The notes beneath the pieces were generated by a model that saw only the letters and a program-made list of their open reading frames with translations, ran no database searches and was not told the origin of the DNA. Below, in pieces: positions 4,027 through 24,642 of a DNA stretch of 25,979 nucleotides. Positions within the stretch are counted from its first letter, which is position 1, and each line of letters opens with the position of its first letter. Origin of the DNA: Zygophlyctis sp. KS116 (Eukaryota > Fungi > Chytridiomycota); the NCBI GenBank assembly GCA_054661495.1, contig BAAFSQ010000137.1:1-25979 (forward strand). The letters are read 5' to 3'. Position numbers and translations under genes: made by a program.

Positions 4027-4035
4027 CTGAGCTCC

Positions 4036-5269: not shown

Positions 5270-5551
5270 AAATCGACGATTTACAAAAATGTATTTTTAC
5301 TATCCCATCTAACTTTGAATATCTAAAGGAAGAATACAAACTTGTATATGCTCAACTTTACAAAAAAATTCTTTTCACCGCTTGCTTTTGACATCAACAT
5401 ATATGAATTTATTATGATGACAAAAGCGAAAATATCATTGAAAAAAATGAATTCTCTGAGACCTTGGTATTTGATCAGAAAGTAGAATTTCTTATATCAA
5501 TGAAATATTCATCAAAACAAGTGGATATAATTCTCGATGGAACCGAAAACA
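5270..5551 (+). repeat. Direct repeat B, copy 1 (matches 10148-10429)
   Basis: 282 bp essentially identical, from aaatcga[c/a]gatttacaaaaatg to ggaaccgaaaaca. Confidence 0.95.
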
Positions 5552-5603
5552 GATATTTCAGTATGCTCATCTACTCAAATCGTTGTTTAAAACATAGTTT
5601 TAA

Positions 5604-6030
5604 TATTGGAAATCGGATAAGAACTAAAGGAGATAGAGCTAAGCCCAAACCTAGTCATTCAAAGGCCTACAGGGTGCCGCAAGCTGCCGCATGTCTCAGA
5701 TCTCACCCTTTTGGACTATAAAAGAGCTCAAGTGGACGTTTTATATCTTTAAGAAAAATAAATCAACTTGCAATGAATGAAAATCTTAAATCGATTGAAC
5801 CCACTGGACTTCCTACTTCAATAGGTTATGGGCCCAATACAGGGTTATTTAAAGTGACTCAATTCAATGGAAATGCTGCTGCTTATGATGCTTGGAAAAC
5901 AAGAATGGAAATTCAAATTAAAGTTCTTGGATTAACTATGCTGACTGACAACAGCCTATTGATTGACGACATCAAAGACTTTAATGTTTTGGATGAAAAG
6001 TTTTATGACTTGATGGTCTGTTCAGTTTCG
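5604..6030 (+). mobile_element. 5' end of a copia element: about 220-bp LTR (5604-5823), PBS (5824-5836) and gag N-terminus
   Basis: Inverted termini TATTG...CAATA, TATAAAA at about 5717, then the copia-type PBS GGTTATGGGCCCA. ORF 5773 has the gag motif FNGNAAAYDAWKTRME. Confidence 0.75.
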
Positions 6031-6779
6031 GATTTAAATCCCCTTATAGACCACATGAAAACAACTTTCCTCTCCTGTGATCAAAACTTTTACTCACTGA
6101 CTGCAGAAAAAGTCAATTGTGGTTCAAATGGAAGAGTTACTGCAAGACAGAGAAATTCAAGTTGAAGTATATGACATGGATTAACACGAAAGAAATGCAG
6201 ATTATCCAACAATGCCAGGCAAACTTCATCACTACATTTTCGAAAGATGTAGAAACAAATCCGGAACAGATCAATTGCTCTCTAATCCCTTTGAAATATC
6301 TCATAAGGCTCTGCAATGGCGTTGCAATCTCCTATTTCACTACCGATATTGTCCCAGATGCTTTAAAAGTTTCAATAGAGGGCATCTTAACCGTTGTGTG
6401 CTATATGATGTGTTGGCAATGTAATTTCAGGGGGACTCGAAGACAGAACTATTTCAGAAAGATATCAAGTCAATTACTAATATGAAAAATATGGATGGAT
6501 CTAATTACACTCTTCTAGACTTCTACCTTAATAATCATGAATATCAAAAATTTATTCAAATCAATGAAAGCTTAGACAAAAAATTACTAAGGGATTAAAG
6601 CCAAAAAAAATATTTTCTTTCTCTCAAAGAGAGTTTTCAGATAAAGATCCGGAATAAATCCGGTTAAATTAGAAAAAATAATAATAAATCTCTTATCTCC
6701 TAACCCTAACTAGTCTTAGTTCCAAAGTAGATTTTCTTTTAAGCTAACCCTAAAGCCAAGTAATTGTCATGAGCATTCT

Positions 6780-7002
6780 AATTTTCCTGACACCGACCCG
6801 GAACTCATGGGTTAGGAAACTTAATCCGAGATGTTTAATCTAATCACTTACATAAACCATTTAACCCTAACGTGTACCAGCCTGTAAGTTGGTACTTATA
6901 CTTTGATATATATTATCTCACTCTATACTAAGGGTTAGTATCTCTACCTATTGTTTAACATGTTGGTACCAACTCGCCCAGGCCCAGATCCGCTTATATA
7001 AT
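6780..7002 (+). repeat. Repeat C, copy 1 (diverged and rearranged relative to 9508-9672)
   Basis: Shares gagatgtttaatctaa and atat[ct]atctcactctat...tattgtttaacatgttggta...ctcgcccaggcccaga[ta]ccgcttatataat with the second copy. 6780-6808 is the reverse complement of 9518-9546 (1 mismatch). Confidence 0.85.
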
Positions 7003-7158
7003 TTAAAATAGTCATCAAATTTGTTGTCCGAATCTTCTTACAGATTAGGAGAGGAAATGGTGTGAAACGGTCCCCTTCCTACACCATTATCTTCCAATTC
7101 AAAAAAGTAGCTACTAGTGATAAGTTTTCTAAATTGATAAAAATGTATTTTAGGATGA

Positions 7159-7246
7159 ATTTGAAAGGTTTGAGAAAAGTATTTGAAAGGCGTGAGAAAA
7201 GTATTTGAAAGGTGTGAGAAAAGTATTTGAAAGGTGTGCGGAAAGC
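7159..7246 (+). repeat. 22-bp tandem repeat x4
   Basis: ATTTGAAAGG[TT/CG/TG]TGAGAAAAGT at 7159, 7181 and 7203, with a diverged copy at 7225. Confidence 0.95.
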
Positions 7247-7254
7247 AGCGGTGA

Positions 7255-7480
7255 TGCAAAAGTGCAAAAAGAACCAGCATGCGGTTTGTGTCCTAGAGGA
7301 AACGAACCCATAGAATACAGGAACGTAAATTTCAGACTGTTGATCGAAAATCATCAATAGATGAAGCTGAGCAAAGTTTTTTGACAAAATCTGAAAGTAC
7401 CTGTAATTCGTAAACATATAGAACTTATTACCATCGATGTAGACAATTGAATGTCTCTGCGTAGAAATGGGTATAATTGC
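7255..7480 (-). mobile_element. MULE/Mutator transposase catalytic-domain fragment with a 31-nt intron (7401-7431)
   Basis: After splicing and correcting one frameshift it reads IVYIDGTFRFC-KNFAQLHLLMIFDQQSEIYVPVFYGFVSSRT, matching the MULE DGTF...YVPV.Y signature. Confidence 0.8.
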
Positions 7481-7510
7481 TTAGGGTTAGGGTAAAAAAC
7501 CTAACCCTAA
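7481..7510. repeat. Head-to-head interstitial telomeric repeats
   Basis: TTAGGGTTAGGGT-AAAAAA-CCTAACCCTAA at the truncation point of the MULE fragment. Confidence 0.9.
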
Positions 7511-8204
7511 AAGATAATTTGAATAAGTTGAACAAGGAAATCGAAGAATATAAGTCCACTTAACTGGTATTCTTGTTTAGCTTACAATAACAGCATTACG
7601 CCAAGAATTTGAATGATTTGATAGTTGCAAAGAATATGGAGGAAATTCAGGCAATTCAAGCAGTAGCTAAAAAAATTGAAAAAATCACTGTCAAGAGGAT
7701 CCGTTCTTTCAAAATGATAATTCTTTTTACCGACGTCTGGAGGCATTTTATCAAGAAACTGCTTTTATTCTTACAAGGGCCGATTCAAAAGAGGTGGTAG
7801 GCTCACAAGATGAACAAGGATTAACCATTCTAGAGTCACATTTGACGATATCCAACAAAAGTAAGTTGTCCGAAAATAAAAATGATCCAGGTTGTCAATC
7901 TGATGCTTCCTCTTTATTCGACATACTGGACCATGGGCAGATGCATGTGTTGAATGGTTTAAAGTAATTCTCTAGTGCAAAAACTTGTTTTCACCAGTAA
8001 AGAGAAAATTGTTTTTCTGCTTAAAATTATGTTGCAAGTTCATTGTCATAAATCAATTTTATTAAAAAGGGTTAGGTGAAATACATCTGATAATGTATTC
8101 AAAATTATAGATGAATTTCTATCTACAAAAATATCAGTTTGAGAGATTTGTTTGGTTGATCTTGTTACCAACAATTACTTGCGCGATAACCTTTTATGAT
8201 GTTA

Positions 8205-8400
8205 ATTAAAGAGACGGGCAGTTCTCTTGACAAAAACGAATCTCAGCCCGAGCTTGCACAATGATACAAATGGTCGAGCACCTTCGAAATGATAAAAAAA
8301 TATTATCAAATAATTGATCCAGTTCAGGAATTGTTTGCACATGATATGCCTGCGGATAGAGTTGCAGATGATGCGCCAATGGACCATTATAGCAGAGTTA
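8205..8400 (+). mobile_element. hAT transposase internal fragment
   Basis: KRRAVLLTKTNLSPSLHNDT-(frameshift)-WSSTFEMIKKYYQI parallels KRAAKLRRFTKLLPLKRNVTRWSSTDMMVKRYFQI in ORF 22641..23147. Confidence 0.65.
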
Positions 8401-9507
8401 AAATGTATCATTTTTAATTGAGCCAGTTTACTACCAAAATAAATATATTTGAGTTTTCTATTTTCAATACAGAATTGTTTGTTATAAAATTTGGTTGTAT
8501 CAAGCGTTTAATCATTGAAGGTAGATACTATGAGATTGAGCAAAACGATCTTTCTTATCCACTTCAAAAGATGCTAAAAAACTAATGCATTTCACTTTTA
8601 ATAATTTTATTTTGAGTCCAGCTCTGACACTGCAGATCTCCACTGAGTTATTCTCCTTCACGTGGTAAAGAAACACCCATGAATCATTCTCCTTTACAAG
8701 GTAAAGAATAAGTAAAAAATCTCTGATTCGTATTTATTTCTTACCGGAGAATCTTATATGACTATCCATCCTATTAAACAGTTCAATTTGTCCAATAATT
8801 TACATTCTGATGATTGATATACGTATTGATTTAATCTATGAAGCAGATACTTACCAATTAGATCAATAAAATTGAAAAGTATTTGAATTATTCAGAAATA
8901 AAACATTATCAATTTGGTATCTGCAGTTTTTGATGTTTTTGAGTTCTTGGTTCGATCTAGAATGAGCCCAGCTCATCCTTCTAAAAATTCTGGATTCATG
9001 AAGAATCCACTGGGAACCTTTTTTTTCATTGTGCCAAGGGTAAGCTGGGCCAGGTTTAAGCTAGGTCGATTATGGTGTATGGCAGCTTCATATTATAACT
9101 TTTCGGTTTTTGGATCTGCCAAGGGACTGGAATAGTCCGAACACAAAAAATTGTAACTCAAGGGAACCTGGAAGTCAAAAAATGTTTAGACCAGCTCGTC
9201 CAAACCCAGAAGTCGATCGGGATCTCCGATTTACCAAAAAAATTTCGTAGGTAACCCTGAGATTTGAAATATGGAGAATACAACCAACACTTCCACATCG
9301 TACGAGTAAAAGTTCACATCCTCTAATTTTTCACCTAAAATAAAATTCAATAAATTACAAAATAATTTGAATTCTCGTCCATTTTTGAGAAATCTTGAGG
9401 GTGGCACAGAGGCAGTAGCTGGAGCTGAATCTCCTTGATGAATTAGGAAGTTGCTAATAAGCTCCTGTTCAGATAGATGACGTCCAGAGGGATACATTCT
9501 TTTAAAT

Positions 9508-9672
9508 TAACCCTTAATATGAGTTCCGGGTCGGCGTCAGGAAAATTATTCGGAGATGTTTAATCTAACAGTTTTTTTATATATCATCTCACTCTATTCA
9601 AAGTTTTGTACCTCTATCTATTGTTTAACATGTTGGTATTACCTCGCCCAGGCCCAGAACCGCTTATATAAT
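9508..9672 (+). repeat. Repeat C, copy 2
   Basis: Homologous to 6780-7002, as described for copy 1. Confidence 0.85.
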
Positions 9673-9679
9673 CCGTTCA

Positions 9680-10810
9680 TAGAGAAGCCGTTAGATAGCA
9701 TAAAATTTCTGGAATCGGTTAAAAATGGACAATCTGAAATCGAACCATTGATGGAATCTGTCACGGAAGTGGTCTAACACTATGAAACAAAACAAAATTT
9801 CAATCAGAAATCGTTAAGCAAAATACGAGACACATTGGTGGTAAAACTTGCTCAATTCTACAAAGTACATTAAAAAAACAGGGTGATATTACAGATTGGA
9901 AATCTTTTCCATGGAAGTTGGTTTAAGGACTTAATGTGTGACAAGTTGCTTCACTCATTTGCCCAAGTTTTTTAAGGTATATTGTACAGATTGTATCGGA
10001 GAAAGTTCGAATATCTTTCAAACGTTGTCATTGATACTGAAATCGCTTGCAATTCATCAAGGATAACAGAAAAACTAAAACAGCAGACAAAAAATTGCTC
10101 TTTTTGTCGGATACAAAACGTAGCAGTGAAATCATTTGTGTATTTAGAAATCGAAGATTTACAAAAATGTATTTTTACTATCCCATCTAACTTTGAATAT
10201 CTAAAGGAAGAATACAAACTTGTATATGCTCAACTTTACAAAAAAATTCTTTTCACCGCTTGCTTTTGACATCAACATATATGAATTTATTATGATGACA
10301 AAAGCGAAAATATCATTGAAAAAAATGAATTCTCTGAGACCTTGGTATTTGATCAGAAAGTAGAATTTCTTATATCAATGAAATATTCATCAAAACAAGT
10401 GGATATAATTCTCGATGGAACCGAAAACATTAATTATTTGGAATGCACGGATAAGTTTTCTGACATACAATCTCAATCAAGCATACCAACGCCTAAGGAA
10501 GTCTTGACAGAAGAAAACAAGAGTGATTGGAAAAAGAAAATACTGATTCTGGATCGGAATATGTGGATATTTATTCTTCATCAACTAGTTTACAAAACGA
10601 GGTTTCTGAATTGTGTAAAAAGAAAAAAATCTTAGAAGATATTCGTAACTTAAAGCCAGAATTGCACAAATTGAAAGATGAAGGATCAACCGACGAATCA
10701 TCTTCAGTGTCTGCTCGGTCTGTTGTCAAATCTTTAAAAGTATGATCGGCCGAAAAAACTAAAACGAGTATTTCATCTGATAAGAAGAAAAATACTGCAA
10801 GTCGTGAAAT
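9680..10810 (+). pseudogene. Degraded coding sequence of unknown family; contains repeat B copy 2 (10148-10429)
   Basis: Chain of same-strand ORFs (9982, 10342, 10527) separated by isolated stops and frameshifts. No recognised domain. Confidence 0.4.
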
Positions 10811-10835
10811 TTATGGGTTAGGGCTACTCCTAACC

Positions 10836-11095
10836 GTTGGAATCTTTTTGATGATACATTCGCTATTACAACAGCTTGCAAAGGAGATAATAATTCGGAT
10901 ACCCGAGGTATAAATTTCCGAAAATATGATACTAGCCCATTAAACGAACGTGTTTCTCTGACATTAGAAGGTCTTGTAAAGTCTCTTATCACTTGAACTT
11001 TGAGGGTATCAGGTTTAATCCCTGTTGAATCAACTACATGCACGAGATAGGTAGAGGATGTCAGAAAGAAATCGCATTAGATCAAATTCCCAAAC
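10836..11095 (-). mobile_element. Ty3/gypsy RT C-terminal/connection fragment
   Basis: HVVDSTGIKPDTLKVQVIRDFTRPSNVRETRSFNGLVSYFRKFIP. Confidence 0.9.
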
Positions 11096-11444
11096 TTTTT
11101 ATTCTGAAATTTACATGGGGCATCTATTAAAATAAAAGAAGCATTGCATATTGTGAACACGCAACTCGACCAAAAAATGTTAGATTTATTTTATAGTTAG
11201 GGTAAGAATGGATTGCAAATTGTGAACGCGCAACTCGACTAACATCTACTGGCATATTCAAATGCTCCTGCTCGACGCTTGGTGTAAATGACTGAGGGAT
11301 CACCAGAAGATTTTGATTGTAAAGTTAATTAAGGAGGTAAAGCGCCTTTCCAAAAAGATCTTCCAATGCACTTTCAATTCCTTCAATGTTCCGGTTATCA
11401 GCGCACGCATCAAGAGTTTGATTCACCAAGTCGTCATATTCTTC

Positions 11445-11492
11445 ATGATGTTCATCGAACCACATAAAACCATGATGTTCATCGAACCACAT
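11445..11492 (+). repeat. 27-bp-period tandem duplication
   Basis: atgatgttcatcgaaccacat occurs twice (MWFDEHH x2 on the minus strand). Confidence 0.85.
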
Positions 11493-11749
11493 TTGAAATG
11501 ATTGTGTCAAGTGGCAAAGATGGTTGGACTCTGTGGGAGCAAAAGCATTATCGACAACTGATTACACATTGATGAGGAAAGCATGGGTTGTTGTAGTGGA
11601 TATGCGAAAGTATTTTTGTGCTTTACTGGAACATTATCACTCTTATGGTAATGCTCAGTTTAATCATGATTTTATTCAACAATAATTTTATGACTTAGTT
11701 AAAATTAGACTTTCTTGATGTGTGGATGTGCACTGGTCAGGGTTAGTGT

Positions 11750-12338
11750 AAGAAGAATCAGAATATCTTGCCCTTTTCTCTCATGACTCTAATCCCAACA
11801 CTACTAGTAAAACATTTTATGATACCGGGTGCACGCCAGAAAGATATTTCCGTGACAAACCACAATTTTATAAGTCAAGTAGGTACAGTGATTACAGCGT
11901 CAAATGAAACTATACAAACATTAGGCATTGGTGAAATCAGAAGCTTTGAAATCTACTTCTTAAGAATGCTAAATGTCCCTGACTTTAGTATAATTTACTA
12001 TCAGGCATTCAACTTATGAATAAAGGTTACACTCAAATTATTAAGGATGGATCTTTAAAAATAATTGATAAAAATATGTTGCGGGGGGGAATATTCAATC
12101 CTTCTTATGGTTTAATTGAAATAAACAAAGATGAGAAACTCAGCCTATCTGTTTCGCAATACCTATCACTAGATATCTGGCAGAAACGAATGGGTTGGAA
12201 AGGCGCTTTACCTCCTTATCGAGAACGATATTTAGAAGAATATGACATTTCTTCGCATTCTTTTGATCCTTGGAGTCGAATGGAGAGCTGCTCAGTTAAT
12301 TTATAGTCATAAAAGAAATATATTTTGAAGCATTAATC
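11750..12338 (+). mobile_element. Copia-like protease/pol fragment; includes repeat A copy 2 (11971-12338)
   Basis: FYDTGCT protease-like motif, VITASNETIQTLGIGEI, LNVPDFS.NLLSGIQLMNKGY, LDIWQKRMG. Confidence 0.75.
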
Positions 12339-12730
12339 TGTTAGAGATGAAACTCTTAAAGATAAAATTTATTATTAAATAAACCTAATAATTGATTTCC
12401 TAGTACTTCCATATGTGAGACTCCCAAACCTACTTGCTTAGGCCTCAAACTCAAACCTACACTGTCAATCACGTTCATCTGAACTAATCTGTCCCTCTAC
12501 ATCTTCCCCCAACTTGTTTAGCTGACGTCCTCGTCAGAACGGGCCAAACACGAAAATTCGAGATTAGATCAGTCTCAGGTGAAGCTGATACAGTTAAACG
12601 AATTACTTAGCGGTCAACAAGACCTAAACATAACTTTAAGAGAACTCTCTGGACTCGACGGACTCAGATTGAATAATTCTGTTAATAAACTCTTTTAAAT
12701 TCATTTATTTTATGATCTAACTATGAGCTC
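12339..12730 (+). mobile_element. Probable copia LTR (about 383 bp) with a PBS remnant
   Basis: Starts TGTTAGA and ends TCTAAC (inverted termini, final A missing). AATAAA near 12685. Followed by TATGAGC, resembling the GGTTATGAGC-type PBS. Confidence 0.6.
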
Positions 12731-13276
12731 CGGCCTATTTGAGCCAGCTACATTCAATTTTGGTTAGATCAATTTCATATTTCTTCAATTGTCCAAATCC
12801 TGTTAAATAAAATTTGCATGCAAATGCATGTTTGAGAAAGACCAATTTAATTAAGTTTTTGTACGTTTTCACTTGTTTGAGTCCAAGAATGAGATTTTGT
12901 TGGTCATCATCCTTCCAATTCTTCAATGCAGAGACGATGCGATCTCTGCTCACATTCCCTGTAAGTTTGATTTGTAATCTGATCTTGTCTGATCTTTCTC
13001 TTGGACAGTCACACATATTCAACCCTTAGCCTAATCAAGCGAATCCACCTTACACTCGGGGAATTGGTTGCTTAGAATTAAGCTTTTTGGAATTAAGCTT
13101 TTCGGTTATTTAAAGTAAACAACGCGTGAACTACTTTAATTTTTAGGAATTCTTTCTGAATTTTTGTAATCGCTTTTTCTGCCAGATGATGGATGTCATC
13201 ATGCTGTTAAATTCGTTACTAGCAAAGGAAAAATGAATAAGTATAGAATGACGCTGATGGTAGGCATGCTAAGGTT

Positions 13277-13294
13277 CAGGGGTTCCGAAAAAAT
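13277..13294 (+). repeat. Orphan DNA-transposon (hAT-like) terminus
   Basis: CAGGGGTTCCGAAAAAAT is identical to 23773-23790. Confidence 0.7.
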
Positions 13295-13824
13295 TAGGTT
13301 AGCAGTTGCACTCATGGTTGGATTGGATTGTCATTTTGAGATTAGGGTTAGATTATACTTTTTAAAAGAAGACTGTTGGAAGAAAATACAGATTTTTTCA
13401 GTTCCAATTATGACAGTTACTGTGGCCACAGCTGACAAAGAAATATATGAATCTACTTGGATGTCTTGGAAGAAAATGATTATTCAAAGAAAAAAAAGAC
13501 GACTGTAATTACTCTTATTGATGGTGACAAAAGAATCTATAGCCTATCATTTAGATCTGGTGACCCATCTTTCAGTGATCTACAAAATTTCAAATCCAAT
13601 TTGTTTTACCTAGGCTTTATACCTAATTTCGTAGGTTTTAAAAAAACTTTCAAATGACTATCTCAATCAGCTATTAATTTTGTTACTGTATGTTGACCAG
13701 CATGCTTGGCTATCTGATCAAATTAGAAAAAGTTACAATTGGTGCTCAGATGAATACTGCTGGAAAAAGAATCTTAAAGTCAGTTAATCCTTGGAAGCCA
13801 GATCATCAGCTCAATCCTTATTGA

Positions 13825-14400
13825 CAAGGTTAGAATGTGCTGCAACTATAACAAATGTAGGAGTGATTATAAATTGATTCATTAGTAATTTAATCTGTTC
13901 TAGTATATGTAGATTTTTAAATTTTAAATCTGATCTTGTGTTCTTATTCATTAAAATATGCTTACACCGTCAATAGCACATTGGGAATCTATATAAATCT
14001 TGATTGTTTGATTTGTGTTACATACTTCTAACGCTCCTAACATGGCTATCAATTCCGCTTTTGTTGATGATGGATTATAATGATCGATCATGATCATGAT
14101 TTTTTTCAAATTTTGTCCTTTTTTGTCCGTTATTAGTATCCCTGCACCTATTTTGTTATTTTCTTGTTTAAGCTTCCAACTGTCCTTAATTTATTTAAAT
14201 CTAGTTTTAGAGTAGAATGATCATTGTTTGAAATTTTTGAGGATTTAAAATCATGTTGTGAGATTTCAGAAACTGATCAATTTTGTTCATTGTCTGATAT
14301 AGGATGAATATCATCTGCATAAGCTATTGCCGAAATTGATAGAGAGTTAGTGAATTTATATACATTTAAGTGTTGCAGTTTTACTATAAGCTACTCTATA
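13825..14400 (-). mobile_element. Non-LTR (LINE) retrotransposon remnant: RT and RNase HI domains
   Basis: SISAIAYADDIH (YADD at 14310-14321), then after a deletion NPSSTKAELIAMLGALEVC...IKIYIDSQCAID...VAAHSN. Not in the ORF track because of stops. Confidence 0.8.
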
Positions 14401-14636
14401 CAGGAGCATTTAGTCAGATTAACCTTGAAGTAGCGTTAGCAGAAAGAATATTGGATTTGGAAGTCGCTTAGTGGAAGGAAGGTGCAAGTGACATGGGCAT
14501 TCATGGAAGCATCAAATAAAGGAGCAAACTGTAGAGAACCTAGAATTTATTCAGGACCAAGGGTTGATTTTTGATTTCGCATGGTTTAAAGATAACATCC
14601 TTTTTTTCTTTCTGACGCAACGATTTTAATTTAACT

Positions 14637-15320
14637 TTAATAGTTTTCTTCCCGGTTTGAGGAGATTGAGACCATGCTATTCAACTTCTTATCACCAGAT
14701 AATACCACAACACGTTTATCAGAGTATTTGTGTAGATAGTTCACGCATTTAATTATTTCAAAATCTGCATATTTATCCTTAAGATAATCCTTCACAGACT
14801 CCACATTTTGAATTATGAGAGAAGTATCCCCTACGACTCTAGGGTTAACTAGCTTTTCAAGAATAACAGTTGCTAACGTGGCCAAATTAGTCTTTCTGTT
14901 ATTATTGTTATCATGAGTTATTCCATCCAGCACCCTCCAGACTCTACAGAGAACCAAAATTGTACTACTATTCTTTGAAAAATGAATGAGAAAATTTTGG
15001 AGATTGTGGTTATTGTCAAAATGCCCGCGAACCATGTCTGTACCCTTAGCATTGAATATATTTAGCAGTAACTGTCTTTGTATCATTTCATTTTGTATGG
15101 CTTTTTGATGAGCTTCTTCAATCGCTTTATTCAATTTTATGCCCTCTTTTTTGCTACTGCCTGATCGATCATTGTCTGAGGCAGCACCGCTATTAGCTTT
15201 TCTGATATAATAAGTCATTCCATTATGCACCATTTGTGCATGGTCGACTGCCCGTCGATATTCCTTAATTTTTTTTTGAGGACACTTTTCGCAACGATAG
15301 ATTCTTTCAGAATTGTCAAA
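14637..15320 (-). pseudogene. C2H2 zinc finger + PIN-like ribonuclease domain protein (degenerate, or spliced at the 5' end)
   Basis: The frame stays open upstream of ATG 15233 to 15320 and reads YRCEKCPQKKIKEYRRAVDHAQMVH. The C-terminal part has HFDNN, ILVLCRVWRVLDGI, ADFEIIKCVNYL and VVVLSGDKKL, resembling PIN_4/Swt1-type motifs. Confidence 0.6.
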
Positions 15321-15518
15321 CTATTTTGACTAGTACTTCATCTTCTGATTTTGAAATCTGAGCGACTCCAACAAGCTCATCAGTTGAGTTCGAGCAGTCT
15401 CTATAGTGTTTAATCAAATTAGAGAATTAAGAGTATGTGAATTTCTTTTCACAATTCTCGCTAGGACAGTAGTAATAGCCATCAATTTTGCATTGTATCT
15501 GCATTTTTTTGTAACCCT

Positions 15519-16062
15519 TAGGACAGACAATAGCGTACAGTAAATCCTTCACTGCATTTACAGCGGAAGCCGGGATACATATAAGGGTTATAAATAGGAG
15601 CAGGTCGCGTATATAATTTTTTTAAAAATTAAGATGACTAACGAAATTGATATTTCAAAGTACTTGACTGACAAGTACGAGAAAAGTCAAAATAATTATG
15701 GGATTTGTGTTCACTGTAACACACATGTTGAATGGAGAACAGAAAGAGTTAAAAACCATTTCTTTAAAAGCTGTAAAACAGCTCCTCTAGAGTTGAAAGA
15801 GAGATTTCGAAACTCCAAGAAGAGAAAAGCGTTGTCTAGTATTTCTTATACAACTGAAGCATCTTGCTCTAATTTCTCTGAAATGTTCCCAGAAGACTCA
15901 GTTTCTACCACTCATCGTACTAGCAAGATAATTGAACATTTTAGAGTCGTAACAGATGCGTTTATTGAAAAAGTAAATGAAACTGGAATTTCTTTCAATG
16001 TTGCGGATTCCGAGTCTTTTAAAGATATTTTTAAGGAAGTCTCTCCAGGCTATAGAAATATC
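15519..16062 (+). mobile_element. hAT transposon 5' part (BED-like zinc finger)
   Basis: GICVHC...RVKNHFFKSC and GISFNVADSESFKDIFKEVSPGY; TACAG motifs upstream also occur at 20100-20180. Confidence 0.75.
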
Positions 16063-17240
16063 ATCTAAAAACCTTAATGGTTCTTATTGGACCGATCCTA
16101 CAACAACACGCTGCGCCAACTTAACAATGATTTTTGTGTCTGCCACATATGATGAAATATCTTCCCTTCCTGAATCATGCAATTTCCACTGAAATCAACA
16201 GTTTAACCTCCAAGAATACTTTCTCAATCATTAACCATCCTCCAGTGAATACTAATATCGTTGATAGTAAATGGGTGTTCAAAGTCAAATACAACACAGA
16301 TGGATCTATCAACAAATACAAGGCTCGCCTGTGTGCCCGAGGGTTTACACAAATAGAAGGAACAGACTATTATAACACATGGGCCCCCACCGGACGATAC
16401 AATTCTCTACGGTTTTTTCTTGCTCTTGCTGCTTACCACAACTTTGAAATTCGGGTCGTTGATGCTGTAACTGCATTTCTGAACTCTAAACTAGACACTC
16501 CTATATTTATGAAAATTCCTCAAGGATTTCCCAATCACTCCGATAACAAATTTTGGCAACTCAACATGACTCTGTATGGCCTCAAACAATCACCACACCT
16601 TTGGAACGTGGACCTGGATAAACATCTCCGTGCTTGTGGGTTTACTCCTTCTTCGTATGAACCATGTTTATATTTCAAGCCAACTTCCAACTCAACTGTA
16701 TCTCTGATATTCGTCTGGGTTGACGATCTTCTAATTGCCTCTCTCCCAGCTTAAATCTCTCCACTTATTGCACAACTCTCTTCGCTCTTTGATCGCAGCG
16801 ATAATGGACCTCTACAAGACTTTCTCAATCTCCGATTTTGTCATGATAAGAGTCAACGCTCAATTACTATTTCCGCCTCACACTATATTTCTCATATGCT
16901 TGTCACATTTCAAATGAAAGACTGTATTCCCGCCGCAACACCAATGGACTCCAATTTTCAACTTGTCAAGAACCGTTCTTCAAAACTGCACCATTCTATT
17001 CCATATCGCTCTTTGGTTGGCCAGCTCCTCTACTTAGCCTATACTGCTCGACCAGACATCGCTGCTGCTGTGGGTGTTTTGTGCAAATTCAGCAACGAGC
17101 CAACAAACGAGCATTTAACAGCAGCAAAAAGAGTTCTTAGATATCTTAAAGGAACCTCAGAATCCTAACCCTAGAACTATCTACGAGGACAATCAAGGTG
17201 CTATTGAACTAACTAAAAGTACCAAAAATCATTCACGCTC
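16063..17240 (+). mobile_element. Ty1/copia RT plus partial RNase H, nested in the hAT element
   Basis: IVDSKWVFKVK, YKARLCARGFTQ, DAVTAFLN, LYGLKQSP, VWVDD, YRSLVGQLLYL, RPDIA, AKRVLRYLKGT, then a jump to IYEDNQGAIEL...NHSRS. Confidence 0.95.
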
Positions 17241-17334
17241 TGATACACTTGATGTTTCATGTGAACCTTAAAAGCGGTAGCTGCCGCAATAAATTCTTTA
17301 CCTTTTTCTAAAACGTATTCTAAAGCCTCCATGT

Positions 17335-17664
17335 GATGGAATCGGTTTAATGGAAAAAGATATGTAGCTTCTGATACTTACACAACTTTTTTGGAACTTT
17401 TAGCCGAGCCTGTATTCAAGGAAAATGAAGAAATTCCGGACCTTATAAAAGATAGATGGGCCTTCTTACACACAGAGTCAATGGGATTTGCTTATTTCCT
17501 AGATCCTAGAAAGCTTGGCGGTAGGAAGATGGTTGGAGATGATAAAAAAGTACGGGAAGTCAACGAAAAGAATATTTGAAGAAGACTTTGGATGATGTCG
17601 AGCCTAAAGACATTGATGCAGAGGTCAGTTCATTTATTCAATATTGGTGCTATTTCAAGAATAC
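17335..17664 (+). mobile_element. hAT transposase middle fragment
   Basis: IKDRWAFLHTESMGFAYFLDPR motif, typical of DUF659-type hAT transposases. Confidence 0.75.
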
Positions 17665-17675
17665 GGTTAGGGTTA

Positions 17676-19745
17676 TTTTTAGTAGCGGCTGTACATGTAC
17701 CCATAATTTTAGGAGCACCGTGGTTCAGTTCAATATCTATTACTAATCTTACTTGGAAAGACAAAATTTTAAAATTCACTGATCTGAAAACAGAAGAATC
17801 TTTTTTGCTTCTCTTGAAGTTGTAGATATTTCGTATGTGGAATTCGAAGAACAGTTGGATAAGAATGAATTTGAGGAATGTGGGATTATAGATCTTTGTT
17901 CCTTTGAAGAGCCCAGCCGCGAGGAATCTCAAGAAATTAATGATCCCGAAACTAAATGTAGATTGAAAGCTCTTTTAAAAGAATACGAGGATATATTTGA
18001 AAAACCTAAAGAGCCGCCTCCCTCACGACCAGAGGATCATGCTATAAATCTTTTAAATAATTCAAATATACCTCTGGTTCGAGGAATCGGACGATTATTT
18101 GAAGCACAGCTTACTATATTAAAAAAGAAAATCAAGGAAATGTCGGAGAGTGGGTTTATCAGACCAAGCAATAGTCCTTTCGGTGCTTCTGTGTTATTTG
18201 CCAAAAAAACCAGATGGGTCATACCGAATGTGCGTCGATTATAGTGGCCTAAATGATATAACATTAAAAGATAAATCTCCTTTACCGCATTTGGGGGAAT
18301 TAAGAGATAGGGTGGCCGGATCTAAGTTGTTTAGTTCAATGGACTTACGGGACGGGTTTTACAATATCCTTGTTAAGGAAGAAGCTAGGTAAAAGACGGC
18401 CTTTAGTACTAGATATGGACAATTTGAGTTTAATGTCTTACCTATGGGGCGAACGAATTCTCCTGCTACTATGCAGGCCACTATGAACAGAATCTTTGGC
18501 CTTTATTATGTTATTTGGCAGCTGGTGTACCTGGACGACCTCTTTGTATATTCAATGGATATTACCACTCATTCGGAGTATCTTCGAAAATTGTTTTAAT
18601 TAATGCGACGGCATAGACTATATTTAAAGCAAGAAAAATGTAAATTCCTGATGCGCTCGGTTCGGTTCTGTGGGCACATCATATCTGCAAGAGGATTTGG
18701 GTTAAATATTGACAAGCTGCCGGCGTAAGACCAATCTCCTCCTTCTTCTAGCAAAGAGGTACAACGATTTTTGGGATAAGTAAATTGGTTTAGAGCGTTT
18801 ATACCAAATTGTTTTGTCCAATCTGGTGCGAAAAGATGTAGTGTTCACTTGGGGGAGAAAGGAGGCCAAATCATTTGAAGAGCTACTCAAATCATTGCAC
18901 GAGGCTCCAATTCTGGGTCACTTTGACCCTAAAAAACAAACTTATCTTTATACCGATGCCTCCCACTTTGCTCGTGGGGGATGGATTGGTCAGGAAAACA
19001 AGTCAGGTGCTATTCAGACCATTGTTTTTTACTTACGAAAGATGAACGAGCATGAAATCAAGTACCCAGTTCACGAGCAAGAATTATTAGCCATTATAAC
19101 AATGATAGATCATCATGGGGTATGTCTCTCACAAGAAGCAATTGTGAAGAATGATCTTGGTGTGGCTACAGTCGCAACCGTTCTTTTCCAGTCGACAAGT
19201 GAGATGGATTATGAAGCTCTAGGAATTTAACTTAAAAATTGAATATTTGCCAGGAAAGCTCAATAATGTTGCAGATTATCACAGCCAAGTTTAGCTCCAA
19301 AATGTCATATCTGCCAAAGCAACATTCAAGACTTTTAGCCTTCTAATGCGGGAACAGACGAGTTCACACTTTCTCGAAACGCCTCAGGAGATATTTGTTT
19401 AGTAGATTTATCGGATGAACCCAAGGCAAAAGAGCATTTAATCTCCTCGTTTCATGATAAAAGACATGCGGGAATTGATGCTACAACGAAGAGTCTAGCC
19501 CGATTTTATTCTTGGCCTAATTTCAAATCTACTGTTGAAGAGTCTATCAAAACTTGCGATATCTCTCAGAGGTTTAAAGGCCTTAATACAAAAGCCCATG
19601 GTTTGCTTCAATCTATTCCGATTCCCCATCTGAGATTTTCTTGTATTGGGATGGACTGGTTCTTTCCGCCTAAAGCACTCAATGGGAAAGATTGTGTGAT
19701 GATCATTGTCGATTATCTAACAAAATATTTTAACTCATTCCGTGT
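17676..19745 (+). mobile_element. Ty3/gypsy pol pseudogene (protease tail, RT, RNase H, integrase N-terminal part)
   Basis: IILGAPW; GFIRPSNSPFGASVLF; KPDGSYRMCVDY; MDLRDGFY; VYLDD near 18525; LYTDAS; YPVHEQELLAI; FHDKRHAG...KTCD; IGMDW...IVDYLTK. Domain order PR-RT-RH-IN. Confidence 0.95.
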
Positions 19746-19749
19746 TCTG

Positions 19750-20189
19750 CGAGAGAAGAGACGTGGTCGGTATTACTTGCTGACCAATTTCCTAGACTTT
19801 ACCGACTTGCGATACGGCTGTTTTCAATGCCGACCTCATCAGCTGCAAGCGAAAGAGCTTGGAGTGTCTTTAGTTTTATTCACTCAAAAAAAAAATGCAG
19901 ATTATTGAACGATACAGTAATGGAATTAGCCAAAGTTTATGTCAACACATCCATTTCTAAGATGGAAAATGCGAAGAAAAAGAACATGAGAGCCATTGAC
20001 TATTTTAAGGAGAATTTGAAAGTAAACGATGATAATTTTGAAACAGAAGAGGAAGAATATTGAAATTATCTAAAAATAAAGAAATATTTACCTGGAAAGT
20101 ACAGTGGACCTTAGCTACAGTGTACTACATTATACTTACCTACAGTACTGTATGAAGAAAACTCACTGTAGCTACAGCGCCGCATCCTA
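19750..20189 (+). mobile_element. hAT C-terminal dimerisation domain and right end
   Basis: LAIRLFSMPTSSAASERAWSVFSFIHSKKKCRL; clustered TACAG/CTGTA subterminal motifs ending GCCGCATCCTA (TAGG- terminus read inward). Confidence 0.85.
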
Positions 20190-20886
20190 GATAGAACCCG
20201 CGTTCATTTTTGGTACATAGTCTGTCGCGTACTGCTCTAGGTTCGGACATAACAAGAACCGATAGGTCCATAAAATATTTAGCAGGCGTCTTAATATCGG
20301 CAATTTTAATAGGTTTCTCCTTACTTGAATCCGATATACTAGACGTAGCTATGACATATTCTTCCACGTGTTTAAGCAATTCTTCTTGATAAACGCTGAG
20401 AGTTTTAAAATCGTTGGGTTTAACTCCTCCGATTTATCTTTATAGTTTATTGTATCGTTTGCGAAATTCGATTTTATGAAAGTCTTATTTCTTGCAACAA
20501 AGCCATCCATATATTTCCGAGCAAGTCTTTTGCGGTATACCCTGTCTCAACTTGAAAACTTCGAAAAGTATAATAATATTATCTTAGATCTCCTAAAGTA
20601 GTTTCTGCCTGTACTATTTATTCAAGCTTCCTAATCGCGTCAAGACGCTGATTAGTTCCTCGAAAGACTCGAAGTCTTCAGATACAAAAATTAGTAGAGT
20701 CCAAATATTTTAAGAAGTCACCAGACGCCTTAGAGTACATAAATGGATATTTCATATTGGCATAGCAAGAATTGGGACGATTTAATTCATTTAAGGGTAT
20801 CTGCACTCGGTGACCCCTAAATCCTAACTCAAAAGCGTGTTTGGTTTAATTCAGGGACGCATATTTTTCCATCACCACTCGAGAAA

Positions 20887-22352
20887 TGATTTCAGCTATG
20901 ACTGAAACTCTTGAAAACCCAAAAACTCTGTTAATTCCTAGTGACTTTGAAAAACTAGCTAAACAGAGTAACTATACTCGTTGAAAACTCCATCTTATTG
21001 ATTTATTACAACATCATGATGAATGGGATGGGGTAATTGACGCTCCTAGGTTTTTTAGTAACCCTAACTTCTAACCTGCTCTACAATTACTAAGTCTAAC
21101 TGTTGATTATTCAGTCAAAAATTTCTATTTGTAAATTGTTGCTCGACCCTTTACTTCAATATCTATGTGGAACGCCTTGAAAGCTTCCCTTGAACCAGAT
21201 TCTCTTCTGTTGAAAACTCAGTTACTTACTGAGATTGTCAATTTTACTCTTAAACTGAACTCTAATTCTGAAGAATCGCTGATAAAATTGACAAAACTTA
21301 TGTCTTCTTTCAATGCCCTCACTTGTAAAGGTTTCTCAGGCTCAGAGTTGTCTCTTATGCTGTTATATACTAAAATCTCTTTTGTTTTACAGGTGTGTCT
21401 TTAAATCCAGAGGTAGATCTTATACACTAAATAAATGTTTTGGATGTAATCCACATTTACGTCATGTGTGCTATCATTGTAAAGAAGCTGGTCAAAAAGA
21501 ATTTAATCACGTCTTTGGTTTCAAATGCACTAATAAAACGGTTGCAGTTTACCCGTTTATATCTGACAGAACAAACTGGTATCTCGACTCAGGTTGCCCT
21601 CAACATATGTCTCCTAGCACTAATAGCAGACCTAGCTGTGTTTCAATAACCACCGCGAGTGGCCATAGCAATCTACTGGAACTGGGACAGTTAAATTAAG
21701 ACATTAAGAAATAATTGATACTCTCTTTTGTCCACCCTCAGTACCAAATCTTTTGTCGGTCAGCCGCTTAGCTATAAAGAACTTTATTACTATCTTTGAT
21801 AACTCGGGATCTATCACAGTACCAAAGAATACGGATGCTGTTAAGTTTATCAACCAGTTAAGATCTCAATCTACTATCAACTCTACGCTAAATGATGGAT
21901 TATACAAAGTATCTCAGGGAAATACAAGTGCATTTATTTCAAAAACTTGGATAGAAGCCCATTAAATGTTTGGCCATAGACACTTTGAAGATCTCCCACG
22001 TATTGCCAAACTTTTTCACTGACGCTAAACCTACTATTTGTGACTGTTGTGCGCAAGGGGAAATGATTCGTGGCAATATTCCACGTTTAAATGTTAATAA
22101 TTTATCTGTATTGCCTGGACAAATCTTGGAGGGAGATTATCAAGGGCCTTTTCCGCTAACTTCATACAATAAAACAAATAGCAATATTAAATTTGTTGAT
22201 GTTGGATAAAAGTATATTTTTATGAAATGTCTTAATGGCAAGACCTCTCATGATATTGCTAAATTCTTTAGCAAAATTTATCATCAATTGCAAACGCAGC
22301 ACAATATTGCCATCAAGGTTGTTAGAACTGATAATGGATCTGAATTAAAAGG
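20887..22352 (+). mobile_element. Ty1/copia gag-protease-integrase pseudogene, same family as 748-4026
   Basis: Shares SRGR.Y...KCFGC, WYLDSGC.QHM, FCPPSVPNL, EGDYQGPF and IAIKVVRTDNG with the first copy; truncated after ELKG. Confidence 0.93.
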
Positions 22353-22359
22353 GTTAGGA

Positions 22360-23345
22360 TTGATATATGTCGTCAGTTTTTTAAGATGTCTACAAAGGAA
22401 CACTATTGGGATTGTAAACTATGTACAGATGAAAAAGGAAACTCTGTCAGAGCATTTAAGCTAACAAAAAACTCAGGATGGTCAAATCTATTTACACATT
22501 TACGGAATTCACACAAGGACTATGAAAAATTACTCAAATCAAATAAAGAGAAACATTTCTCTTCTTTTATTATTCCACAAAAGGTTCTAATACGTTTTCT
22601 TGGATTGAATTAATTGTAACCAAAAACCTTCCCCTCAGCTTTGTTGATTATCATCTGGTTAGAAAAGCAGTACATTTTGATAAGACCAGAAGAAGACATT
22701 TTGAAGAAAATAGAGACACTAATGTCTAAACTCTCAACTATTAAAAGGGCGGCGAAATTAAGGAGATTTACTAAGCTTCTACCACTAAAAAGAAATGTGA
22801 CTAGATGGTCGTCGACGGATATGATGGTGAAAAGATATTTTCAAATCAGAGAGTATTTAGATACTCGAGATTCAGAACTAAAACTATGGGTTCCAGATCT
22901 CTATGAAGAGAAAGCACTTAAAGAATTGGAAACAAAATTAAAGGACATTGAATCGGTTACTTTGAAATTACAAGAAGAAGACATTGATATGCTTTCAGTC
23001 AGAAAGCTCTTTGATGCTTTAATTAAAAGGTTTCCTGTAATGGCACAATATCTTTCCCCCACAGCAGATATTGTGCATTATCAGGCTTTTGAATCAGGAG
23101 TTTGCAAGATTTTGGTAGTAGAGGAATCATTGGACAATTCTAAATAAAAAGCTCTTGAAAATTTCAAAATTGTAGAAAAAAATTGTTATTTGGAAATACT
23201 ACTTTTCTTAAAATTTAATCGAGAACTGTGGGATGAAAAGCTTCTCGCCATATCTTATAATGAAGAAAGTTCGAAATAAGTAGAAATTGGGCTATTTTAA
23301 AGCAATAAATCAATAATTTATTGCGCTATTTTATCAATTGCAATC
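22360..23345 (+). mobile_element. hAT transposase with internal deletions
   Basis: BED-like WDCKLC...GWSNLFTHLRNSH; WIELIVTKNLPLSFVD; NVTRWSST; HYQAFESGVCKI; C-terminal LEILLFLKFNRELWD; ATTGC-rich tail. Confidence 0.88.
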
Positions 23346-23391
23346 CTCCTTATCCTTGACCATAGTAGCAGACACTGCAACTAAGGATGGT

Positions 23392-23466
23392 CAATCACCA
23401 TAATCATAATCACTTCTTAATTAATCACGTTTAATCACTTTTAATCACATTAATCATAATCACCTG
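23392..23466 (-). repeat. DNA-transposon end with TAATCA(C) subterminal repeats
   Basis: TAATCA at 23401, 23407, 23422, 23432, 23442, 23451 and 23457; reads CAGGTGATTAT inward from 23466. Confidence 0.65.
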
Positions 23467-23639
23467 TTAAGCTGCAAACAATTGAAAGTCAATTCAAAAC
23501 AGCTTTTCAATTTTACAAAGACAAGAACAAGATGTCTTTAGAAGTAAACAATACAGCCGTTGCGTTACCTTTGGGAAATTCATCTACAAAGGACTCAAGA
23601 GGTAGTGCAACGTAATTTCTTAATTTAGATATTTCAGTT

Positions 23640-23765
23640 TACAGCCTTTAGATGCTTTATTAGGACCTGAAGCAGTTTTGCATTTTGGAAATCTAAAGAA
23701 TTCGACTTTCCCATTTTGTCTGCTATGGCTCAAAACTATCTAACGGTTCAAGCTTCAAGTGTACA
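23640..23765 (+). mobile_element. hAT dimerisation-domain fragment
   Basis: FPILSAMAQNYLTVQASSV. Confidence 0.75.
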
Positions 23766-23772
23766 TGCACTG

Positions 23773-23840
23773 CAGGGGTTCCGAAAAAATAATTGCGATA
23801 AAAATAATTGCAATAATTATTGCCACAATTATTTTTACTA
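23773..23840 (+). repeat. hAT-like terminus with (A/T)ATTGC subterminal repeats
   Basis: CAGGGGTTCCGAAAAAATAATTGCG followed by repeated aataattgc/attattgc. Confidence 0.7.
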
Positions 23841-24151
23841 AAAAAATTCGCGTCTGCCGCGTCATGGACACTTACGTCACTGATTTTGAGAAAAATAACC
23901 TAAGTTATTTGAAGTAAAAGTTTTAATAACTATGGTTATGTTTCTCAAATTCTGCATCAGCGTAGTTATTAGAACCATTAGTTTGACCCCTTTACCAAAA
24001 GACTTGAAAAATCAAATTGAGGCGAGACAAATGTAAAATCAAATTATTTATGTTTATTAGTTATTAGAAAGATCAAATTAAGACAGAACAGAATTTCCTC
24101 TCTTAACGATGCAGGATCAAAACCGAAGCAGCCTTAGCTCTGCTGTTCCTA

Positions 24152-24490
24152 CCTTTCATCAAGTAAGGGAGTAAAAGCAAGTAAGTGCTGCTTTGTGATT
24201 TCTTTAGCTGAACTAAATACTGCAAAAATTCCAATAAAATGGGTTGAATCTTCTGACCAACCATCAAAAATGATGGCGAATTTCTCAGGCAAATCATCCT
24301 TGATTCGATTCTCTACTTGTAGAACTAATAACTCCATATACTTCATGAGAGTTTCAACACTGATTGGCTTTAATTTTGTATACTTTTTTGTGCATTCATC
24401 TTCGCAGAAACTGAATGGCAAATTTTTTGCTACAATCCAATCAATCCATCCATATATGTTACTCGATTTGGAATCAATAAATGAGGTTAG
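24152..24490 (-). mobile_element. hAT transposase fragment with the first catalytic Asp
   Basis: IYGWIDWIVAKNLPFSFCED...KPISVETLMKYM...FAIIFDGWS...LLAFTPLLDE. Confidence 0.85.
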
Positions 24491-24642
24491 TACTAACCCT
24501 AAGAATTTTGAAAAATAAATAATTAGAGATTATTAACTATACGCTTAGGTGGTGTCAGACGCGTCCATGGAGCCACCCCTTGACTCGGTGAATAAAACCC
24601 TTAAAGCAAACTCGCGTCAACTTCGTATCTTTTTCAAGTCCA

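Follow-up and report, generated by a model that had tools for sequence, protein, structure and literature searches.

Short words in telomere register recur among the transposable-element (TE) fragments of a contig of the chytrid Zygophlyctis sp. KS116, and the question they raise is whether they mark places where TE DNA was broken and rejoined and, if so, what made them. We analyzed a stretch of 25,979 nt (the window), for which a first-pass annotation had reported 11 matches to the 8-mer TAACCCTA/TAGGGTTA and additional 7- to 8-mers at 6809, 6931, 8068, 10815, 11196, 11739 and 22350. All of these were found in place; against the 11 matches, dinucleotide shuffles averaged 0.50 and never exceeded 3. 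The hexamer TTAGGG by itself was not enriched in the window (14 occurrences versus 9.3 expected). We defined a patch as a maximal TTAGGG-phase stretch and counted those that reached 8, 9 or 10 nt; the window contained 18, 13 and 10 of these, compared with 1.8, 0.4 and 0.1 expected under an order-2 Markov model. No patch of at least 8 nt was present at 1-6698 or 24503-25979, in agreement with the earlier observation that the least-decayed elements are free of the motif. Across 193 kb of TE DNA from the Zygophlyctis genome, patches of at least 9 nt numbered 49 versus 4.0 expected, a density of 25 per 100 kb compared with 2.4 per 100 kb in copia-bearing contigs of other organisms totalling 460 kb.

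The motif is not spread evenly. Genome-wide it is restricted to small TE-rich contigs, with the patches concentrated in a few of them (C131, C133 and C137). In gene-rich contigs the 8-mer was under-represented (328 occurrences versus 974 for a reversed control), and the 10-mer was found only four times in C1 to C96. The patches follow the exact TTAGGG register, and a typical one spans 9 to 13 nt, or 1.5 to 2 units. The longest measures 13 nt, about 2 units, and (TTAGGG)3 had zero instances across the 12.7-Mb assembly. Degenerate in-phase flanks were absent (3.16 versus 3.15 matches of 12 beside patches). The patches are truly short and are not remnants within degenerate repeats. Patch starts were biased to TTAGGG (26 of 49), and the preferred phase was centred on TTAGGGTTA; the phase bias is partly compositional.

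We compared patch positions with the ends of BLAST homology, in a homology sample that comprised only 193 kb picked for its resemblance to the window. Of 14 patch sites, eight lay no more than 3 nt from a homology end, versus 8.4% for random 10-nt intervals (p = 4.5e-6), and a more sensitive alignment (word-7 BLAST), which added 8068, 14840 and 21059, placed 12 of the 14 on a breakpoint or indel. The claim that the motifs sit on truncation, deletion or fusion points was borne out at 8, and up to 12, of 14 sites, whereas no breakpoint was found in the 193-kb sample at 6744, 6809, 11739 and 24485. Paralogous parent copies (paralogues, not orthologous empty alleles) passed through at least 10 junctions without a patch, and the patch was missing from parents at 7510, 13352, 17675, 17157-17177, 10834, 11195, 22352, C777:1183 and C403:867. 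Because the parent copies continue straight through without the motif, the patches are non-templated filler, a point that the first-pass annotation had proposed to test, and these alignments indicate one-step insertion at the junctions. The events so marked are deletions, truncations, fragment fusions and a few small insertions, with 0 to 4 nt of microhomology in telomere register (e.g., GTT, TT, TTA or AGG). The adjoining fragments belong to many unrelated families and are cut at arbitrary internal positions.

Deletion within a single element is seen at 17157-17177, where a filler of about 21 nt containing CCTAACCCTA (17164-17173, minus strand) accompanies the loss of about 260 bp from a copia RT/RNase H region (RVT_2 at 16134-16754). 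The alignment to C337 covers 16189-17156 and resumes at 17178, its two blocks being separated by about 272 bp of C337 sequence, and C525 gives the same picture. At 17665-17675 (plus strand), GGTTAGGGTTA caps the 5' truncation of a gypsy-type element (17675-19756) with RVT_1 and RT_RNaseH_2 domains downstream; C1009 and C156 align from 17675 and 17694, and their further upstream sequence is common to both but not to the window. The truncation of a copia integrase fragment coincides with AGGGTTAGG at 22350-22358 (plus strand), with 3 to 4 nt of microhomology (AGG/AGGG); the window's own copia (837-1810) and C918 align to 22352 and 22354, after which the integrase continues. The same word at 8068-8076 (plus strand) lies immediately past the end of a C341-like fragment, the word-7 alignment to C341 stopping at 8068. 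GTTAGGGT (11196-11203, plus strand) comes right after a C385-like fragment, two C385 copies aligning to 11190 and 11195 and then differing, and TTAGGGTTAG (13342-13351, plus strand) abuts a C335-like fragment, where alignment to the motif-free parent L039 begins at 13352. On the minus strand, TAACCCTAAC followed by the 7-nt ttctaac (21059-21075) abuts a C329-like fragment whose alignment begins at 21076; ttctaac looks like a decayed repeat unit. A gapped alignment with a C872 paralogue places an insertion of about 24 nt containing TAGGGTTA (14840-14847) at 14833-14856 (plus strand), and a patch in C236 has a 13-bp flanking duplication. Changes of the end-joining type include the deletion with 21-nt filler, the microhomology, spacers of 5 to 7 nt and a small duplication. 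At 6699-6710 (minus strand), CCTAACCCTAAC joins a truncated copia-gag fragment (6037-6709) to a C644-like repeat (6710-6932); the HSPs end at 6709/6710, and contigs of public freshwater runs (X1-X3) bridge the junction. TAACCCTAAC at 6862-6871 (minus strand) stands two bases upstream of a truncated dispersed-repeat fragment, to which C615, C873 and C471 align only from 6874, with unrelated sequence upstream; C644 has the same junction.

Two or three sites in the window have a head-to-head arrangement. At 7481-7510, a 13-nt G-strand patch is followed by a 6-A spacer and an 11-nt C-strand patch. Alignment to C403 begins only at 7510, the motif being missing upstream in C403, and X1-X3 contigs covering 6899-7558 bridge the junction with 0 differences. 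At 10815-10835, GGGTTAGGG, the spacer ctact and CCTAACC stand immediately upstream of a C500-like fragment; the C500 alignment begins at 10834, the upstream sequence of the parent is unrelated, and the junction is bridged by X1-X3 contigs and by a 199-nt contig of the lake metagenome X4. A small head-to-head arrangement of GGTTAG, ta and CTAACCCTAA can be read at 24485-24502, upstream of a Crypton-like element; the 193-kb sample held no homologous copy defining a breakpoint there. Genome-wide, we counted four GTTAGG...CCTAAC pairs, including that at 7481-7510, and no tail-to-tail pair; because reversed-pattern controls gave 24 and 10, the difference of 4 versus 0 is weak. At most junctions both sides abut the patch, which leaves a 3'-addition orientation rule without statistical power.

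We propose, with a probability of roughly 55%, that broken ends are extended by about one template length, by telomerase or by some other activity that copies a telomeric template, and are then joined; this would place the short-ITS mechanism of vertebrates in a new lineage, at very high density. The patches would be scars left in TE-rich DNA by error-prone repair of double-strand breaks. The 3' end at a break, often with 1 to 4 terminal bases in telomere register, would be lengthened by about one telomerase-template length, with TTAGGGTTA as the core and up to 13 nt in all, and end joining would then ligate it to a second broken end. Such repair would produce deletions, fusions between unrelated TE fragments or, in rare cases, simple insertions flanked by a short duplication, and extension of both ends would yield a head-to-head scar. 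Longer tracts would be either not made or not tolerated, and scars would persist in TE graveyards alone, since sloppy repair does no harm there. We infer that telomerase is the polymerase and that the ends are ligated by end joining, either Ku-dependent or microhomology-mediated. Telomerase is a plausible maker of the patches because TERT (RBD on C66) and Ku (two loci) are present, as the first-pass annotation had suggested checking, because Batrachochytrium, a sequenced chytrid, has TTAGGG telomeres (PMC11797018), and because patch size fits one template length. Searches of the 12.7-Mb assembly for telomere arrays of GGG type with period 6 or 7 found none, and telomerase RNA was not found with RF00024. 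AC preceded TTAGGGTTA nine times out of 32 (p = 1.4e-5), A/AA tended to follow TTAGG, and these flank biases are not predicted by a simple model. A further point against the proposal is the junction at 6699, where two copies have the same fragment downstream of the G-strand patch but different partners upstream of it, so that re-breakage at the patch is needed. The first-pass reading of a dedicated system, by which TE DNA would be routinely deleted and rejoined, was overstated: only about 12 to 14 of the 137 homology-end clusters in the window, at most about 10%, bear a patch. The annotation itself remarked that not all junctions carry the motif.

This type of scar has already been described for vertebrate short interstitial telomeric sequences (short ITSs). 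Vertebrate short ITSs and TERC-ITSs (Nergadze, Giulotto; PMC8537989, PMC7215372) are likewise one-step insertions in telomere register at repaired double-strand breaks, with NHEJ-type modifications, and share with the patches deletions, random bases, microhomology, occasional head-to-head order and telomerase as the proposed source. However, vertebrate arrays have a few to hundreds of units, whereas the chytrid patches never exceed 13 nt; short ITSs are sparse in mammals according to the first-pass annotation, whereas patches occur about once per 2 to 4 kb of TE DNA; and vertebrate loci show no TE enrichment, whereas patches are restricted to TE graveyards and mark places where TE fragments have fused. 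Beside the patches, no flank derived from telomerase RNA was identified. The patches look like the vertebrate telomerase-assisted break-repair scar, far denser, in the TE graveyards of a freshwater chytrid. De novo telomere addition at TG-rich seeds similarly extends a 3' end from a few telomere-like microhomology bases, but it leads to a terminal deletion and a functional telomere, whereas the chytrid extension would stop after about one template length and be rejoined internally.

Could the patches instead record the history of a chromosome end? In a region that is, or once was, subtelomeric, repeated terminal breakage, telomere healing, erosion to a stub and capture or fusion would internalise one remnant per cycle, an account that we consider unlikely. 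Both the head-to-head "fusion-type" scars and the concentration of patches in few contigs are consistent with it, and short telomere tracts internalised at fungal chromosome ends are known. In Magnaporthe oryzae, TTAGGG tracts at MoTeR junctions resemble the patches in being internally stable only at 2 units or fewer, with no internal (TTAGGG)3, and ITSs of at least 3 units are unstable (PMC7367193). However, those tracts belong to one telomere-specific retrotransposon at chromosome ends, in fixed orientation (PMC7367193), whereas the patches involve many unrelated TE families, mixed orientation and no telomere-targeting element. The pairs at 7481-7510 and 10815-10835 have the G-strand-then-C-strand order of fusion-type ITSs, but their arms of 7 to 13 nt are not arrays and their flanks are TE fragments, with neither arrays nor subtelomeric flanks seen in the window. 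Patch orientation is mixed along 18 kb of the window, terminal events cannot produce the single-element deletion at 17164 or the small insertions at 14840 and in C236, and longer or degenerate tracts are lacking, with no telomere array anywhere near; all of this argues against a chromosome-end origin.

Telomerase-independent filling, in which a Pol-theta-type polymerase or a TE reverse transcriptase copies telomeric DNA, telomeric repeat RNA or a nearby patch before joining, is improbable as well. It would leave the same junction anatomy of microhomology, extra filler bases and short duplications, and local clustering, such as that of three patches within 170 bp at 6699-6871, accords with it. 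The start bias to TTAGGG and the limit of about one template length, however, are indirect pointers to a fixed short template rather than to copying from long arrays.

The first-pass annotation had also raised selection for protein binding. The core TAGGGTTA, which we take to be a known Myb site, would be of the TRF/Tay1/Teb1 type, and patches would be kept or spread, nucleating heterochromatin or marking a centromere-like TE island. The preferred phase centred on TTAGGGTTA and the restriction of patches to TE islands, with few in gene-rich contigs, point in this direction, and in Neurospora telomere repeats are able to trigger H3K27 methylation. Nevertheless, we regard selection as very unlikely, since it cannot account for the origin of patches that arise as breakpoint insertions missing from the parents and not as point mutations, and since the phase bias is in part a matter of composition. 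Myb/TRF binding could still influence which patches are retained.

It is highly improbable that the motif belongs to mobile elements, whether as a TE terminus, through a telomere-targeting retroelement of MoTeR, Athena or Coprina type, or as a preferred insertion target. The window and C745 do have the same fragment plus patch with different partners: C745 carries the left fragment and patch of the 6699 junction and then diverges, and C644 carries the right fragment without the patch. However, the fragment that the window and C745 have in common is a truncated copia gag region and not a natural terminus, and the fragments adjoining patches derive from copia, gypsy and a number of unrelated repeats, lie in either orientation and have parents without the motif. 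No Penelope-like or non-LTR RT adjoins the patches, nor does one retroelement family stand beside every patch in fixed orientation, as it does for MoTeR and Athena/Coprina. Chimeric joins made during assembly or amplification are negligible as an explanation, even for a short-read de Bruijn-type assembly with 77-nt contig overlaps, as the examined junctions are bridged with 0 differences by contigs of three to four public freshwater runs from different studies, junctions are common to paralogues 7 to 12% diverged, and a word of 8 to 13 nt is unable to misjoin k=77 paths.

If telomerase makes the scars, the genome would constitute a dense natural record of telomerase at internal breaks in competition with end joining, probably of hundreds of events in 12.7 Mb. 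For vertebrates, rare loci are the basis on which the process is inferred, and one experiment that induced breaks in cell culture did not reproduce it (PMC8537989); with a dense record, seed usage, template boundaries and length limits could be treated statistically. More speculatively, and with little confidence, we suggest that internal breaks in this chytrid lineage may be accessible to telomerase, which may act routinely in TE-rich chromatin, for one template length before end joining, making telomere-register 10-mers a standing signature of TE decay, and that patches might recruit telomere-binding proteins which help to define silent or centromere-like TE islands.

Patches can also serve as practical markers of ancient breakpoints in annotating the TE mosaics of early-diverging fungi. 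Among the first-pass TE labels, Pfam searches gave support for copia, gypsy and Crypton-like (NDC10_II) elements, weak support for hAT and none for MULE. Scars would later be copied along with segmental duplications, as the patch CTAACCCTAA at 6744-6753 (minus strand) illustrates: it lies within the C644-shared repeat, an identical patch occurs at L005/C644:199-208 in an alignment of 93% identity, and it is an older scar, inherited by duplication with the repeat from a C644-like copy.

The genome is represented by a short-read assembly of 12.7 Mb in 1175 contigs, of which the window is the whole of C137, and GC content is approximately 35% throughout the window. Pfam searches placed a fairly intact copia element at approximately 1200-3325, a second copia RT at 16134-16754, a gypsy-type RT/RNase H at 18150-19230, a weak hAT dimerization match at 19827-20063 and a Crypton-like NDC10_II domain at 25337-25780, and did not confirm the MULE label given in the first-pass annotation. 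BLAST comparison with the remainder of the assembly resolved 6-24.5 kb of the window into a mosaic of pieces of 100 to 1100 bp, each with its own set of paralogues elsewhere in the genome. The contig also carries recent internal duplications of 280 to 370 bp linking its 4.5-5.5 kb and 10-12.3 kb regions (10148-10429 equals 5270-5551 at 100%, and 11971-12338 equals 4487-4855 at 98%), and a 198-aa ORF within the TE mosaic (14637-15233, minus strand) gave a weak PIN_4 match just below the cutoff (E=3e-4). Exact 77-nt overlaps join 15058-15134, 23827-23903 and 25903-25979 to the ends of neighboring contigs (C872:1-77, C674:2789-2865 and C267:1-77, respectively). Such overlaps are characteristic of assembly on a de Bruijn graph with k=77, in which C267 is probably the neighbor at the right end of the window.

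The 8-mer TAACCCTA/TAGGGTTA occurs 11 times in the window, exactly where the first-pass annotation had located it, compared with 0.5 occurrences expected from shuffles. The bare hexamer TTAGGG was not enriched in the window (14 versus 9.3 expected), and the signal therefore resides in words of at least 1.3 units. Maximal TTAGGG-register stretches of at least 9 nt (here termed patches) numbered 13 in the window against 0.38 expected, and 49 in 193 kb of the TE DNA of this genome against 4.0 expected. Patch density was 25 per 100 kb here versus 2.4 per 100 kb in a 460-kb set of metagenome contigs that carry copia elements and belong to other organisms; these came from a copia-based scan that yielded only distant elements (33-43% identity) and served as controls, not as relatives. 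Genome-wide, the 8-mer was not enriched (328 matches versus 974 for the reversed control). The 10-mer CTAACCCTAA had 110 matches genome-wide and only 4 in the 96 largest, gene-rich contigs, indicating that the signal belongs to small TE-rich contigs such as C131, C133 and C137; a 12-mer occurred 15 times in the genome and an 18-mer not at all. The scarcity of telomere-register words outside TE-rich contigs suggests that they are purged from gene-rich DNA. Counts of hexamer pairs genome-wide were below those of controls. Among the large gene-rich contigs, TAACCCTAAGT occurs once, at C2:26631-26641, where it may be a telomerase RNA template.

In order to relate patches to breakpoints, we collected 168 homology-end coordinates in the window, omitting ends caused by locus edges; all homology statistics are based on the 193-kb sample. 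Eight of the 14 patch sites lay within 3 nt of a homology end, compared with 8.4% of random 10-nt intervals (p=4.5e-6), which upholds the earlier claim that many of the motifs sit on or next to truncation points. Word-7 alignment placed three further sites on a break or indel: a C341-like fragment terminates exactly at the patch at 8068, the motif at 14840 lies within a 24-nt insertion relative to C872, and a C329-like fragment begins 7 nt past the patch at 21059. The patch at 6744 lies inside a repeat whose C644 copy has it too, and thus represents an older scar that has since been duplicated. The sites at 24485, 6809 and 11739 had no homologue within the 193-kb sample. Conversely, only approximately one-tenth of the 137 end clusters bear a patch. 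At 6931-6938, inside one repeat copy, the 8-nt stretch AGGGTTAG stands where sister copies in C745, C873 and C471 have AGTTTGG; this telomere-like word is the product of a small replacement and is not at a fragment end.

The patches were compared with paralogous copies. At 7510, 13352, 17675, 10834, 11195, 22352 and 17157-17177, and on other contigs at C777:1183 and C403:867, paralogues have the neighboring fragment in common with the patched copy but, in place of the patch, run on into sequence of their own family. The clearest cases are four in which both parents are known. In C777, one family breaks after ...aaacaaGTT and the other resumes with tggacc..., with AGGGTTA in between; in C403, the break follows ...ccttatTT, with AGGGTTAGGG as filler. 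The third, at 17157-17177, is a copia from which approximately 260 bp have been lost and to which 21 nt containing CCTAACCCTA have been added, and at 22350 a copia integrase fragment ending in ...AAAGG runs on as GTTAGG. Telomere-register overlaps of 0 to 4 nt are common at the upstream edge of junctions, and extra filler, where present, is 5 to 7 nt long and lies at the opposite edge or between two patches. A difference in gaps upstream and downstream of the G-strand patch is only suggestive, as few junctions have both parents known. On the basis of these alignments, the patches are non-templated. A few are plain insertions with flanking duplication; in the best case, at approximately C236:10862-10897 (L054:684-719 in the local homology sample), TTAGGGTTAG has on its flanks a direct duplication of 13 bp without mismatch (tgtcttgaatcac); in contrast to the fusion junctions, this is a simple insertion in which the target was duplicated. 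Such duplications are not general, as those of at least 4 bp flanked 4 of 49 patches versus 5% in controls.

Exact patch lengths were 9 to 13 nt, with none longer, and the observed limits were TTAGGGTTAGG. We considered whether patches are the cores of longer decayed arrays and rejected this, since in-phase matches over 12 nt of flank equaled out-of-phase controls (upstream, 3.16 versus 3.15; downstream, 2.94 versus 3.00); the only site resembling a decayed second unit is 21059-21075. The first T of TTAGGG was the start in 26 of 49 patches, and ...TTA, ...TTAG and ...TTAGG were the favored ends. Patch size looks like approximately one telomerase-template length, with base composition and G-run mutation adding to the bias. 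The dinucleotide AC directly preceded TTAGGGTTA in 9 of 32 unrelated contexts in the 193-kb sample (background, 4.8%; p=1.4e-5), and A/AA was overrepresented after TTAGG; these biases might stem from a preference for certain seeds or from copying that runs on into the flanks of the telomerase RNA template. Head-to-head sites occur in the window at 7481-7510 and 10815-10835, with a third, small one at 24485-24502. Addition to 3' ends predicts head-to-head pairs without tail-to-tail pairs, and GTTAGG...CCTAAC pairs genome-wide were head-to-head in 4 cases and tail-to-tail in none, an underpowered comparison with small numbers and higher reversed-pattern controls.

This anatomy is that of filler DNA from error-prone break repair with a telomeric template as its source, and the patches are short interstitial telomere-repeat scars of such repair. 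The first-pass observation is thus confirmed on stronger evidence than its author could give, and its interpretation is partly supported, the support covering break-repair scars and not a dedicated TE-shredding system. We consider a candidate telomerase the probable copier (probability approximately 55%): a broken 3' end would be extended by approximately one template length and then sealed by end joining. At 6699, this would require the added assumption of a second break at a pre-existing patch. There, fragment and patch are common to the window and C745, the partners differ, and both partners are truncated when compared with their respective parents; re-breakage at a fragile or seed-like patch is plausible. 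The genome encodes a TERT RNA-binding domain (C66:33829-34210, minus strand) and two Ku-domain genes (C408:1014-1556, plus strand; C75:38440-38997, minus strand). Searches of the assembly for (TTAGGG)5, (TTAGGG)3 and generic period-6 or period-7 GGG patterns found no telomere arrays, and the telomerase RNA model Rfam RF00024 had no match. The extended words CCTAACCCTAAGT and TTCCTAACCCTAA were confined to TE contigs and hence gave no telomerase RNA template candidate. Chromosome ends in Batrachochytrium are TTAGGG (PMC11797018).

It is accepted that the short interstitial telomeric sequences of vertebrates entered break sites in one step, accompanied by deletions and randomly added bases; now and then the tracts are head-to-head, which is attributed to a second telomerase at work on the opposite end (PMC8537989). 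The event here is of the same known kind; it differs in that the host is a chytrid, the density is very high, the length is always 13 nt or less and the scars are confined to TE graveyards. Internal tracts in Magnaporthe are stable up to 2 units but break at 3 units or more, and (TTAGGG)3 does not occur at internal sites (PMC7367193); this may explain why the upper length limit is so sharp.

Cycles in which a chromosome end is healed by a new telomere and then fused would also account for the head-to-head scars but are at odds with the mixed orientation, the intra-element deletion and the small insertions, and are unlikely. Copying of telomeric DNA or RNA by a telomerase-independent polymerase is a less likely source of the filler. 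Patch retention may be affected by selection for Myb/TRF sites, although such selection cannot account for the origin of patches at junctions. A TE-borne motif is largely excluded, templating in a TE consensus or terminus having been ruled out at approximately 10 junctions; the fragment-plus-patch shared by 6699 and C745 is not a TE terminus, since it ends inside copia gag.

An assembly artifact is likewise largely excluded, as contigs from the three public runs that contain most of the window cover several junctions with no differences (6648-6891, 6899-7558, 9643-10986 and 11106-11324). One run carries an organism label, and the other two are freshwater metagenomes that come from separate studies; one of the runs with the best coverage of the window may be the source sample. 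A low-depth lake metagenome from a fourth study contains a 199-nt contig spanning 10815-10835, together with copies of parent type whose starts are at 6710 and 7510 and whose upstream sequence is different. The contigs of all four runs were assembled from short reads, with no long reads among them. In addition, junctions are common to paralogues that are now 7-12% diverged. Within 8674-9163 of the window, a high-depth contig of one run (X3) skips 488 nt (8675-9162) carried by the other two (X1 and X2), a structural variant or alternative repeat path between samples.
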